A DNA stretch of 63,882 nucleotides, the filler included, from Octopus bimaculoides (Eukaryota), in NCBI RefSeq assembly GCF_001194135.2. It is 5 parts of 5 records of this genome, joined end to end, with 100 filler letters (N's around TTAATTAATTAA, not from the genome) between each part and the next. Parts side by side here need not be neighbours in the genome. Positions count along the whole stretch, not along the records: positions 9,878 to 34,978 come from NC_068982.1; 4 more parts are not named here. One strand, given 5' to 3'. Shown piece after piece: positions 13,464-31,551 of the stretch (the stretch's first letter is position 1; each line of letters starts with the position of its first letter). The notes beneath the pieces were generated by a model. The model saw nothing but the letters and a program-made list of their open reading frames with translations. It was not told the origin of the DNA and made no database searches. The position numbers and the translations under genes are program-made.

Positions 13464-13573
13464 ACTGTGGCAGTGTTATTCAACTAAAAAGGAAAGCTCG
13501 AAGTTCAATAATAACTTCCCCGAATTTTCCAAGAAAATATAGCGATAACCTCCTCTGTCATTGGCTTATCAAG
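13464..13573 (+). CDS. Mosaic extracellular protein exon A: CUB domain N-terminal part (DCGSVIQLKRKARSSIITSPNFPRKYSDNLLCHWLIK)
   Basis: TAG acceptor at 13461-13463 and GTGAGT donor at 13574; 110 nt, phase 1 to 0; CUB signature CG...ITSPNFP..Y..NL.C.W.I. Confidence 0.93.
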
Positions 13574-13802
13574 GTGAGTGCTGACACATTTCAGCGCGAA
13601 CGTATATGCATGTATGTATGTATGTATGTATGTATGTATGTATGTATGTATGTATGTATGTATGTAAGTATGTATGTATGTATGTATGTATGTATGTATG
13701 TATGTGTGTATGTATGTATGTGTGTATGTATGTATGTGTGTGTGCGAATGCGCGTNNNNNNNNNNTGTGTGTGTGTGTGTGTGTGTGTGCGTGTGTGTGT
13801 GT

Positions 13803-14005
13803 GGAGGCGCAATGGCCCAGTGGTTAGGGCAGCGGACTCGCAGTCATAGGATCGCGGTTTCGATTGCCAGACCGGGCGTTGTGTGTGTTTATTGAGCGAA
13901 AACACCTAAAGCTCCACAAAGTTTCGGCAGGGGATGGTGGTGAACCCTGCTGTACTCTTTCATCACAACTTTCTCTCACTCTTACTTCCTGTTTCTGTTG
14001 TGCCA
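13803..14005 (+). mobile_element. tRNA-derived SINE family D (partial)
   Basis: ggaggcgcaatggcccagtggttagggcagcggactcg head with B-box-like ggtttcgattgcc; second copy at 33449-33728. Confidence 0.8.
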
Positions 14006-16578
14006 ACAACAATGTATATATGTATATGTGTGTGTGTGATTCATATAATGTACATACGTGAACACGCGCCCGTACATATGACATCTACAAGTGCTACGTA
14101 GTAAAAAATTCCACTGCAAGAGTGAAACTATACAAGTATCTCTGATCATACTATTGTGTTAGCGATTAAACCGAGTGGATTCTGAGAAAATTTAGCGATC
14201 GAAATAAATGTAAACGTATTTGTAACGGATAATATTCGCAATTTCGTCTTATTTCATGTTCCACGAAATCTATCTTAATTCGTGCCTAACATACATAAAC
14301 ATGGCAAACATTCAGTCAAACGCACATACATAGACACATATGTATATATGTGTGTATATATGCATATAGTTATTCTTGCGTTTATTTTACATATAGTCCC
14401 CCATATATATATNNNNNNNNNNNNNNNNNNNNNNNNNNNNNNNNNNNNNNNNNNNNNNNNNNNNNNNNNNNNNNNNNNNNNNNNNNNNNNNNNNNNNNNN
14501 NNNNNNNNNNNNNNNNNNNNNNNNNNNNNNNNNNNNNNNNNNNNNNNNNNNNNNNNNNNNNNNNNNNNNNNNNNNNNNNNNNNNNNNNNNNNNNNNNNNN
14601 NNNNNNNNNNNNNNNNNNNNNNNNNNNNNNNNNNNNNNNNNNNNNNNNNNNNNNNNNNNNNNNNNNNNNNNNNNNNNNNNNNNNNNNNNNNNNNNNNNNN
14701 NNNNNNNNNNNNNNNNNNNNNNNNNNNNNNNNNNNNNNNNNNNNNNNNNNNNNNNNNNNNNNNNNNNNNNNNNNNNNNNNNNNNNNNNNNNNNNNNNNNN
14801 NNNNNNNNNNNNNNNNNNNNNNNNNNNNNNNNNNNNNNNNNNNNNNNNNNNNNNNNNNNNNNNNNNNNNNNNNNNNNNNNNNNCGTGTGTGTGTGCCTGT
14901 GTATCTGAAAGGAGTGTCAATGGGAAAGAGAAGGAAAGAAGAAAGAAGAAAATTGTGTTTACAGCTGGTCAGTTCTTTCAATGACAAGTTTATTCTTGGC
15001 CTTTTTAAAAATAATTTGTACTGGATGAAGGACTAAATTTGTAAAGTAAACTGTAATTTTTTAATTTCAATTTTATTCATATTTCACCAACAATTTTCGT
15101 CTTTTTCACATACTTCACTTTCTTTGTATATTCATCACAATATTTCATTATTCTTAATCATTCTTCATCTTTGGAACAACAGTGCCTAAAAACGGCAAGA
15201 AACCCAGATAGTGGGACATTTTTGTGCCAACTAGAATTGAACCCAGTTACCTAAGTTCTCATATTTCTCTCCTACCTTTTTTGAACTAACCAGCTGTATA
15301 GATGTAAACACAATTCCTTCCTTCCTTCCTTCCTTCCCTTTTCCATTGACACTCCTTTCAGATACACAGGCACACATACGCGCACGCGCGCAGGCGCACA
15401 CGCACACATACACACACTCAAAAACACACCCACACACTCTCTCCCACTGGACATTGATGCCAAAAAAATTTTTGAAAGACAACTTTCTTCCAAACACTGC
15501 TACCTGGTTTTGCCATTTCTTTTTAAAAAGGCCAAGAATAATCCTAATATCCGCCTGTTCAACTGTATATATCTTTAGAAAGCATTACCACTATAGAACT
15601 CGATCCATTGCAGGTTACAGGGAAGCAAAAACAGTATAAGGCTTACTGAAGATCCCCTTAAAATCTTCTCTCAACAAATGCGTAGATTTTGACAGAATGG
15701 CGTTTCTCATACAACTTTCTCAATATATCTGTATTTTAAAGGATATTATCAACGATTATAGAACACGCGTCACCTTATATTAGTGACTCCAGACAGTGTT
15801 ATGTCTGTCTCTCTGAGAAGTACTACATACTATTGCAATTTTGAACAGACAAAACTTAATTTGTAAATAAATTCATACACTTTCTTCATTATTTACTGAG
15901 GAATTTCCGAGTACTAACTTGCTTACGAAGTATATTTCTCACACAATGCATTTTTCAAAACATAAGAGATAGTCATATGAAAAAAAAAAATTATATATTC
16001 AACACTAAAACTAGCTTCTCTTCTTGCTCATGTGCGTTTTACATTGATGATATTGAATAAACCACATGTTTCTGTATTAGAGTAGTTGAATATATCCCGT
16101 GTTCTACGCATAAAAACTGAATAGATGAATGAGTGATGCATTTTCTAAAGATCTTTCGATAGTCAATGAAATCACGATGCCTAGTATTGCGACATGTTTA
16201 CGAATAATTTGTCTCGCTATTTCTCTACTTCAATTTAAATAATCGGCACTATGAAACTTGAAATTATAACTCAAAAAGATTCAGGTTTTAATGTATGTAG
16301 GTGTTTGATGTTGTGAGCAGTATATTTTAATGTATACATATACAGTTGGTGAGCTGTTATACACAGTTGTCTTTAGAGAAACAAACATGTCAAAAAATAG
16401 AGTGAAATGGTAACTAAGACAAAATGCAAACGGAATTCACCAAATTCATGAAAGTTGAAAAATAATTATATAGCTTTGTTTATAAAATAATTACAAAGGA
16501 TATAAAATACCTTCATAAAAATATCTAGGTTACTCGTACTAATGTTTGATCTGAAGCCAATATTTTATTTCTTTGCAG

Positions 16579-16697
16579 AGTCCAAAAAATTCTTTGATAA
16601 GACTTAAATTTTTGAAATTTTTCATCGAAGGCAGGAAGAAAATATGTCCAGATTATGTTGAGATTCGTTTCAATTTAATAGGTCAACCAGGAATCAA
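16579..16697 (+). CDS. Exon B: CUB domain middle (SPKNSLIRLKFLKFFIEGRKKICPDYVEIRFNLIGQPGI)
   Basis: Acceptor tttctttgcag and donor GTAAGA; 119 nt, phase 0 to 2, in frame with exons A and C; CUB motif I.L.F..F.IE....C.DYVEI. Confidence 0.92.
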
Positions 16698-17336
16698 GTA
16701 AGAGTTTACGTTATTTTTACAGAAAAGAATAAAGAAGAAATTAAGAAAATAATCTCACTGCTCATAAGATGTGAATTTATATTATGTTACATCATTAGTT
16801 TTAGTAATCCAGGAAAAAGATATTTCTGACGTCTTTAGACAAGGACTGTTGTAAAATAACAAATTATTCGACAGTGATATTATTTAGCAGGTAAAATTCT
16901 TCGAGAATTTTCGAGATAACACGATAAACATAAGCCCTTTGTGATCGTTGAGATTCGACTTCATTTGACTGAAACAAGATTCCAATGTGAACAGAAAACA
17001 CTAATGAAATGTTAAAACGCATTAAAACATTAATGAAATATTAAAAGAACACTTCCCACAATTCTCTGCTACATTAGCCATGCAAGTACACTTCAAGATA
17101 TACGATTTCTTAACGTTGTTGCTTGTTAGGAGTGTAAAGTTGAAGTCTCGTGATAACCCGTTAATGGCATATTTAGTTAATAACTTTAATGAAGAGATAT
17201 ACTAAATATATATTCAAAATAACAAACTTTTATTTTGTTTCCATAATTAGAGGAAAGGCGTAAGATCTTACATACCACGTATTTCTCGTTTGTGGAACGA
17301 ATTTAAATTAGATACTCTTATGTCTTTTTCGACCAG

Positions 17337-29925: not shown

Positions 29926-30839
29926 TACCTCAACAATGCAGTTGACTCCACCCTGAAAACGCGGCAAATTTGGCAGTGTGTATTAGTTACTGCAGAAACG
30001 TTTGAAGTGCAGAAATGAAAAGTATAATTAACTGCTGGATAGAACTAGATATAAGTCTCTGTTCGCTTTTATTATAAATTCATTACTTTCTCTACCTAAA
30101 ACATGCAGTCTATATAGGGACATATGAATCTATCGATGTGGAGATAGACTGAGGTTAGTAAACCAAACTAACTGGAGATTTTTATACACTCACTGAAGTT
30201 AGCCAACATTAATATCCGGCAAAAGTGTCTACGGCACCCACTGGATTTCTATATACCCCTACCAACAAAAATTTGGAAATATATAAATATATATATGTGT
30301 GTGTGTGTGTGTGTGTGTGTGTGTGTGTGTGTGTGTGTGTGTGTGTGTGTGTGTNNNNNNNNNNNNNNNNNNNNNNNNNNNNNNNNNNNNNNNNNNNNNN
30401 NNNNNNNNNNNNNNNNNNNNNNNNNNNNNNNNNNNNNNNNNNNNNNNNNNNNNNNNNNNNNNNNNNNNNNNNNNNNNNNNNNNNNNNNNNNNNNNNNNNN
30501 NNNNNNNNNNNNNNNNNNNNNNNNNNNNNNNNNNNNNNNNNNNNNNNNNNNNNNNNNNNNNNNNNNNNNNNNNNNNNNNNNNNNNNNNNNNNNNNNNNNN
30601 NNNNNNNNNNNNNNNNNNNNNNNNNNNNNNNNNNNNNNNNNNNNNNNNNNNNNNNNNNNNNNNNNNNNNNNNNNNNNNNNNNNNNNNNNNNNNNNNNNNN
30701 NNNNNNNNNNNNNNNNNNNNNAGAGAGAGAGAGAGAGAGAGAGAGAGAGAGAGAGAGAGAGAGAGAGAAAGAGGAGTAGAAGTAAGAAATAAATGAATGT
30801 AGTTGATTATCTTGCATATGTAAACTTATAATATTCTTT

Positions 30840-31049
30840 TCAAATTTTGGCACAAGGCTAATAATTTCGCGGAAGAAGATAAGTTGATTACACTGACACC
30901 AGTGTTCAACTGGCACTTATTTTATCGAGCCCGAAATTATGAAAACGAAAGTCGACCTCAGAGGAATCTGAAGTTAGAACGTTAAGACGGACAAAATGCC
31001 GTTATGCATTATGACTGGCGTGCTAACGCTTCTACCAACTCGCCGCCAT
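30840..31049 (-). mobile_element. SINE family C
   Basis: Reverse complement of the family C consensus seen at 1394-1575. Confidence 0.8.
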
Positions 31050-31081
31050 AGCAGACTTAAATATTAATCCATATAAAAAGT

Positions 31082-31290
31082 AGCGAGCTGGCAGAATCGA
31101 TAGCACAACGGGCAAAATGCTTAGCGGCATTTCGTCCGTTGTTACGTTTTGAGTTCAAATTCCGCCGAGGTCGATTTTGCCTTTCATCATTTCAGGGTCG
31201 ATAAAATAAGTACCAGATGGGCACTGGGGTGGATGTAACTAATTTATCCCTTTCCCTAAAGCTGCTGGCCATGTGCTAAGATTTGAAACC
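31082..31290 (+). mobile_element. SINE family C with 14-bp target-site duplication
   Basis: AATATTAATCCATA at 31060-31073 and 31291-31304 flanks the copy. Confidence 0.85.
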
Positions 31291-31394
31291 AATATTAATC
31301 CATACATAAGTCCTCAAATAATATAAAAATCCCGATAACGTTACAAGTGCTGTTATATGTAACGTTTTCTTTTTCATATTTTCTGGAAAATAAG

Positions 31395-31551
31395 TATGCC
31401 CTTTAGAATGGACTCACCATTTTGGGTCATGTTACCGTTTTTTCCATGAGCAACGAATCTATCAAGATGCTGAAGAAAAGTGCAAGGAACATAATTCTGT
31501 GGTACTGGCACCAGAAAATGAAAGAGAATATAAGTTTATGCTGTCGCAAAT
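31395..31551 (+). CDS. Exon H: long-form C-type lectin domain, N-terminal half (ICPLEWTHHFGSCYRFFHEQRIYQDAEEKCKEHNSVVLAPENEREYKFMLSQ)
   Basis: AAG acceptor (atypical, purine-rich just upstream) and donor GTAAGT; 157 nt, phase 1 to 2; CP..W..F.GSCY.F......A...C...N..L..P.N..E motif. Confidence 0.88.

Follow-up and report, generated by a model that had tools for sequence, protein, structure and literature searches.

The catalytic domain of the astacins (MEROPS M12A) carries the zinc motif HExxHxxGxxHxxxRxDR and a Met-turn. CUB, ShKT, SUSHI, CLEC and KRING are among the accessory domains listed for astacins in a review, whose Supplementary Table also contains astacins of Mytilus coruscus (A0A6J8CIB2) and Dimorphilus gyrociliatus (A0A7I8VBN4) with both CLEC and KRING (PMC9848320). 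We analyzed a stretch of 63,882 nucleotides from Octopus bimaculoides (RefSeq assembly GCF_001194135.2; the window in the following), which is joined from five genomic parts, and describe here a gene on the + strand of the part coming from NC_068982.1 (positions 9878-34978; the piece in the following). We assign eight internal exons in the window, with a probability of about 0.65, to a gene from a lophotrochozoan group of zinc metalloendopeptidases, an astacin (M12A) subfamily with a long mosaic tail. The tail of this subfamily consists of a CUB domain, a kringle, a ShK-type module, a CCP (Sushi) module and a C-type lectin domain; beyond these come more modules of the ShK and CCP types and then a C-terminal domain. 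Judged from homology the window gene, which seems to lack an annotation, is a new member of an uncharacterised but already existing astacin subfamily and not a new kind of gene.

The eight exons lie within 13464-31551, and their join of 1075 nt has 357 full codons and no stop, in agreement with the first-pass annotation of this DNA, which had predicted eight exons spliced in frame at GT-AG sites into about 358 aa. To find relatives of the gene an exhaustive search was carried out with exon 5, the 40-aa second kringle exon. It gave 439 matches at E <= 0.001, and the best 150 of these 439 were screened locally with each module of the window. A word-indexed protein search with the join or with the family alignment returned partial matches only (CUB proteins, Kremen, amphioxus astacin) and missed the true relatives. 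The protein XP_005088874.2 of Aplysia californica (P0156; LOC101856539), named 'uncharacterized protein' and in UniRef 'Metalloendopeptidase', has the Pfam order Astacin (173-333), ShK, ApeC (464-650), CUB, Kringle, Sushi and Lectin_C. In a BLASTP search with the joined exons, a check which the first-pass annotation had proposed, it was matched collinearly over the whole length (residues 1-356 against 657-1006, 32% identity, E 6e-60) without any rearrangement. The hypothetical protein KAL4227421.1 of Mactra antiquata (P0144) likewise aligned without rearrangement to residues 1-309 of the join (34% identity, E 9e-62). Our reading of the gene rests on this collinearity of the tail with astacin-bearing proteins and on the intron positions and phases common to Aplysia (see below), and both support the earlier suggestion that the exons form the tail of a secreted mollusc astacin.

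Five relatives of the window gene carry an astacin domain. A protein from a JGI metagenome contig (P0063) and a Branchiostoma protein annotated as 'blastula protease 10-like' have the order Astacin-CUB-kringle x3. In addition the RefSeq model XP_074660537.1 (P0090, 'SVEP1-like', GCA_964204645.2) begins at the residue equivalent to the start of exon 2, and in the 3.3 kb upstream of its start (locus L002, 6766-10029, OZ123236.1) we find an astacin zinc site (HELGHTIGLYHEQLRSDRD; Pfam Astacin 37.5 bits). The same unannotated stretch also contains the first CUB exon, which the model lacks, and an exon of the EGF-like type. On this sequence evidence the gene of XP_074660537.1 is also an astacin, and its RefSeq model is truncated and misnamed. 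The module string, which had been called unusual in the first-pass annotation, is less so, as it recurs in several invertebrate genomes, though it is uncharacterised; besides the table in PMC9848320 we found no paper describing these proteins in the literature searched.

The exon boundaries were set by inspecting the DNA, starting from stop-free stretches of the + strand with recognisable pieces of extracellular modules. Each of the eight exons has an AG acceptor after a pyrimidine-rich tract and a GT donor, all splice sites being canonical:

Exon 1, 13464-13573, + strand: start of the CUB domain (split codon xAC, then CGSVIQL...HWLIK), Pfam CUB; acceptor in phase 1, donor GTGAGT in phase 0; matched in tblastn with Mactra KAL4227421.1 and with P0063.
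Exon 2, 16579-16697, + strand: middle of the CUB domain (SPKNSLIRLKF...GQPGI), Pfam CUB and tblastn with relatives; donor GTAAGA in phase 2.
Exon 3, 17337-17458, + strand: end of the CUB domain (KYCGKMP...AIVEYVE), the CUB profile being unbroken over exons 1-3; donor in phase 1.
Exon 4, 17849-17981, + strand: first half of the kringle (GRSLCFNLKDHGRTYRG...PFNS); donor GTTAGT in phase 2 with a Trp codon split as TG/G, the intron having the same position and phase as in Aplysia.
Exon 5, 19595-19716, + strand: second half of the kringle (DITRGIGNHNHCRNPGHGLQPWCYTDSHNCSRKYCDPCQI); donor in phase 1.
Exon 6, 24383-24520, + strand: ShK-like module with four cysteines (AGSYDMFPNC...FC...LCHKTCGHY); phase 1 at both ends.
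Exon 7, 27565-27738, + strand: single CCP/Sushi module in one exon of phase 1-1, with borders as in Aplysia.
Exon 8, 31395-31551, + strand: first exon of the C-type lectin domain (ICPLEWTHHFGSCYRFF...EYKFMLSQ); donor GTAAGT in phase 2.

The introns between these exons are 0.4 to 4.7 kb long. Wherever two modules meet, the boundary is in phase 1, as one would expect if extracellular modules had been shuffled, and the introns within modules have phases 0 and 2 (CUB), 2 (kringle) and 2 (lectin). Since the donor of exon 8 is in phase 2, the gene extends past this exon. The sequons NET, NCS, NVS and NAS named in the first-pass annotation are present at residues 148, 190, 225 and 289; four sequons per 357 aa are, by a rough estimate, about the chance level.

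The exon boundaries were then set against those of Aplysia by mapping the protein XP_005088874.2 onto its genomic locus. All seven comparable boundaries agree in aligned position and phase:

Before the CUB domain (between ApeC and CUB in Aplysia): phase 1 in both genes; split codon G/AC before 'DCGG' in Aplysia, xAC in the window.
Between CUB and kringle: phase 1 in both genes.
Within the kringle: phase 2 in both genes.
Between kringle and ShK-like module: phase 1 in both genes.
Between ShK-like module and CCP: phase 1 in both genes.
Between CCP and lectin domain: phase 1 in both genes.
Within the lectin domain (first lectin intron): phase 2 in both genes.

The seven shared boundaries therefore support both the splice model and common descent. 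At the Aplysia locus (L003, 22672-24868, KB941397.1) the exons of the CUB domain (residues 656-767 of XP_005088874.2) were not found. Presumably they lie within a 2.2 kb N gap, and hence the CUB-internal introns are outside this comparison. An ATG at 13361 shares the reading frame of exon 1; a start there would lengthen the protein by 34 residues (MLSMMFIVCMRHVNSSYLLLWCTQYISISFIHLV; 13361-13463), which make a poor signal peptide. Because of this and of the conserved phase-1 boundary we favour the acceptor at 13464 and regard the ATG as a coincidence.

The modules were identified with Pfam, which was run on the whole join and on the single modules with cut-offs of 21.4 (CUB), 34.3 (Kringle), 20.9 (ShK), 20.7 (Sushi) and 22.6 bits (Lectin_C). 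Three modules score above their cut-offs: CUB (PF00431; 68.3 bits, E 8.8e-19) in one stretch covering profile positions 6-108 and three exons, Kringle (PF00051; 51.6 bits, E 1.2e-13) in one stretch over two exons, and Sushi (PF00084; 28 bits, E 2.9e-6). By reading the sequence the four cysteines of the CUB domain are located at CGS, LLCHW, ICPDY and YCGK, and the CCP module has the pattern C...C...C..W...C. Read against textbook Ca2+-binding CUB domains the Ca2+ site keeps the Glu and the first Asp and has an Asn at the third position. The kringle possesses all six conserved cysteines and two extra ones (NCRHH and NCSRK), and the relatives have a cysteine in both extra columns. Lysine-binding kringles carry an acidic pair within the motif CRNPDGD, whereas the window kringle reads CRNPGHG and is devoid of this pair; lysine binding is therefore unlikely as far as the motif allows to predict. 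Among PDB sequences the CUB domain matched cubilin and neuropilin, and the kringle matched plasminogen, HGF, Kremen and ROR.

Exon 8 reaches 17.7 bits with Lectin_C (PF00059), below the cut-off because just the first third of the domain is present. A phmmer search of the PDB with this exon gave 149 matches at E <= 1, all of them C-type lectin domains, with the best between 1e-9 and 1e-6. In tblastn it was matched by the carbohydrate-recognition domain of DC-SIGN with E 2e-6. The Ca2+/sugar-binding motifs EPN/QPD and WND of the lectin domain would sit on exons outside the piece. Thus, of the five modules in the first-pass annotation, CUB, kringle and CCP stand as named, the lectin is represented by its first exon only, and the ShKT module is present only in a degenerate form with four cysteines.

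In ShKT domains the six cysteines form the disulfides C1-C6, C2-C4 and C3-C5. Exon 6 has C2 to C5 alone, with a serine at the position of C1 and a tyrosine at that of C6, and therefore lacks the six cysteines which define a ShKT domain. Against Pfam ShK (PF01549) it scores 12.7 bits (E 0.2), below the cut-off. The homologous modules taken singly reach 12.7 to 20.3 bits, the Mactra module having no match. The window and Aplysia have other residues in place of C1 and C6 and retain the D of CxD and the C-x-x-T-C core, and a six-cysteine ShK is found at the equivalent position after the kringle in XP_074660537.1 and in Mactra. When a profile of four homologous modules was compared by hhalign with a canonical ShK set (three domains from these proteins together with ShK and BgK toxin sequences), the probability was 96% (E 2.9e-9), a score of the kind that alignments of small cysteine-rich domains inflate. 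We accept exon 6, on the basis of the profile match and the positional homology, as a ShK-derived module without the C1-C6 disulfide. No sequence match to exon 6 was found in the PDB, and a single-sequence AlphaFold model of it (three helices; predicted local distance difference test, pLDDT, 72) gave no fold match there. We also considered exon 6 as the first half of a Kremen-type WSC domain. This assignment has no Pfam support and the second half of the domain is missing, and the ShK assignment was preferred.

Five N gaps are located within the gene, all of them in introns (two in intron 1, two in intron 6 and one in intron 7). Every gap of the piece adjoins a dinucleotide microsatellite on at least one side, as would be the case if the assembly had broken at repeats. 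Across the gap-bearing intron 1 the match to the CUB profile is uninterrupted, and the proteins of Aplysia and Mactra and XP_074660537.1 span the exon 1/2, 6/7 and 7/8 junctions with a gap of at most two residues. Since the relatives align across the gapped junctions, the flanks of each gap belong to one another, and the gaps hide no exon known from the relatives. Judged from the aligned proteins, this collinearity argues against a scaffolding chimera.

Under the astacin assignment the 5′ exons beyond the piece would encode a signal peptide, a propeptide and the astacin catalytic domain. The product would be a secreted glycoprotein, namely a protease cutting extracellular substrates. Its tail would set the site and target of action by directing the protease to substrates or surfaces, with CUB, kringle and CCP predicted to bind proteins and the lectin domain predicted to bind either glycans or proteins. 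Roles in immunity, digestion or venom, as raised in the first-pass annotation, are conjectural.

Several results weigh against this assignment. The astacin motif HExxH...HE is absent throughout 9878-34978, and tblastn of the same region with crayfish astacin and with the astacin parts of the Aplysia, Mactra and P0063 proteins gave no match, as the first-pass annotation had anticipated when it placed the protease domain outside the readable sequence. No convincing signal-peptide exon emerged when the sequence was scanned for an ATG with a hydrophobic core behind it and a donor in phase 1. The word-indexed search of public proteins returned no transcript or annotated protein containing these exons. 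With the best relatives the window join shares 29-36% identity, and the gene may on this account be a paralogue rather than an orthologue. Finally, no astacin was seen in the 10 kb upstream of a Biomphalaria relative (P0166), and genes consisting of the tail only may exist. The readable sequence before exon 1 amounts to about 2.6 kb and that after exon 8 to about 3.1 kb, and the gene runs off the edge of the piece. As these flanks are short compared to introns of 0.4-4.7 kb, the absence from the piece carries little weight either way. Tblastn of the piece with four relatives detected the eight known exons only, and no further lectin exon was found in 31552-34978, either by motif or by tblastn with three known lectin domains and with the relatives. 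A Pfam scan of the concatenated + strand reported CUB, Kringle and Pif1_2B only; it missed the known Sushi exon and is no evidence of absence.

The missing catalytic exon could also be taken literally. The gene would then encode a secreted or membrane-bound binding or recognition protein with the modules CUB, kringle, ShK-like, CCP and lectin, being a paralogue which has lost or never had the astacin domain, and besides the piece itself and the 10 kb upstream of P0166, where no astacin was seen, it can be noted that the models of both P0090 and P0166 are annotated without astacin. However, the astacin of P0090 was found directly upstream of its truncated model, five relatives have the domain, and the phase-1 acceptor of exon 1 corresponds to the ApeC-CUB junction of Aplysia, so that upstream coding exons are to be expected. 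We consider a gene made of the tail only unlikely, though deserving attention. Somewhat less likely still is the conjecture that a protease-less derivative arose in this lineage. Its tail, including the lectin domain and the ShK variant with two disulfides, might then be secreted as a stand-alone binding protein, decoy or toxin-like factor, perhaps in saliva or mucus, instead of directing an astacin to its targets.

A decaying copy which still appears spliceable, i.e., a pseudogene or gene relic, would account for the lack of a matching protein in the word-indexed collections, for the two cysteines missing from the ShK-like module and for the transposon fragments in the introns. Yet all eight exons are free of stops and frameshifts, the structural cysteines of CUB, kringle and CCP are all retained and the splice sites are canonical throughout. 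The loss of C1 and C6 occurs identically in the annotated gene of Aplysia, and it is therefore a family variant and not decay. We regard such a relic as improbable. The pairing of kringle and CUB is likewise known from the Wnt co-receptor Kremen, Kremen 1/2 are among the top matches of the kringle, and a weak alignment extends into the first half of the Kremen WSC domain. A Kremen-like gene is nevertheless scarcely credible here: the window has CUB before the kringle in contrast to the Kremen order kringle-WSC-CUB-transmembrane segment, Pfam WSC was detected neither in the join nor in the single modules, Kremen has no CCP and lectin modules, and the collinear astacin-tail relatives match far better. 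The astacin subfamily thus remains our favoured assignment.

The piece is 35% G+C, rich in microsatellites and interrupted by seven N runs, and looks like part of a repeat-rich animal genome. The following elements were noted:

24849-25421, + strand, intron 6: stop-free stretch with a Pif1-type helicase 2B domain (Pfam 40 bits, E 2.7e-10), probably a fragment of a Helitron-like transposon.
25645-26361, + strand, intron 6: reverse-transcriptase fragment similar to long interspersed nuclear elements (LINEs), RVT_1 21.9 bits, below cut-off; its sole database relatives are two short open reading frames (ORFs) with 63-68% identity.
20556-20686 and 31083-31213, + strand, and 24148-24341, 29844-29927 and 30838-31031, inverted: short interspersed repeat family with 72-84% identity.
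13921-14004/33469-33552, 22794-22859/28053-28118, 22055-22241/22929-23115 and 12358-12435/19150-19227: four more dispersed repeat families with 70-93% identity.
11926-12051, 12455-12547, 13086-13223, 19255-19400 and 19509-19580: extended trinucleotide repeats, namely (ACT)n, (AAT)n and (ATT)n/(GTT)n.

The short interspersed family may resemble the abundant short interspersed nuclear elements (SINEs) of octopus. One of its copies stops about 40 nt ahead of exon 6, an inverted pair (30829-31043/31083-31297) stops about 100 nt ahead of exon 8, and one (ACT)n run stops 14 nt ahead of the acceptor of exon 5. The repeat copy at 12358-12435 overlaps the end of a retroelement-like ORF pair (12042-12383) and extends just beyond it.

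Two further observations concern the family as a whole. Short ORFs with the second kringle exon (55-62% identity to the window exon) occur in the Logan/ENA contigs P0102, P0105, P0130, P0133, P0136, P0142, P0145 and P0154. They have the motif ...N[YF]CRNPG.G..PWCY..C.R.YCD.C. and end where the window exon ends; according to these ORFs the CUB-kringle-ShK-CCP astacin family is probably present unannotated in further genomes. The Aplysia protein (residues 1185-1357) and the Mactra protein (about 760-946) have in common a terminal domain of about 170 aa (...WEF[FY]...FQVWR.FG...) without a Pfam match.

With this analysis a repeat-rich invertebrate genome gains a gene which apparently lacks annotation, and the gene is linked to a recurring, unstudied astacin subfamily whose tail modules are more familiar from the coagulation, complement and lectin proteins of vertebrates. 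Cephalopods have been reported to possess few C-type lectin genes (PMC10140915), and therefore each hidden lectin-bearing gene of a cephalopod counts. The comparison also revealed the truncated and misnamed RefSeq model XP_074660537.1 in a relative. The understanding of how astacins work is unchanged by our finding.

When set against known systems, the window gene shares with the astacins of Mytilus coruscus and Dimorphilus in PMC9848320, compared as table entries only, the lophotrochozoan origin and the combination of C-type lectin and kringle, whereas the table gives those proteins another module order without CUB, ShK or CCP. With Kremen 1/2 it shares the kringle motif GxGNHNHCRNP and the presence of a CUB domain. 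KAL4227421.1 of Mactra has the same order CUB-kringle-ShK-CCP with Astacin in front, but its ShK after the kringle has six cysteines, and the first CCP is followed by ShK and CCP instead of the lectin domain. XP_074660537.1 has CUB-kringle-ShK-CCP-lectin in the same order as the window, but its model begins within the CUB domain and many additional CCP and kringle modules are found downstream. XP_005088874.2 of Aplysia has the same string of CUB, kringle, ShK-like module, CCP and lectin, including the same four-cysteine variant of the ShK-like module. In the Aplysia protein Astacin, ShK and ApeC precede the CUB domain, and the part seen in the window is followed by the remainder of the lectin domain with the QPD and WND motifs, ShK, CCP and the C-terminal domain.

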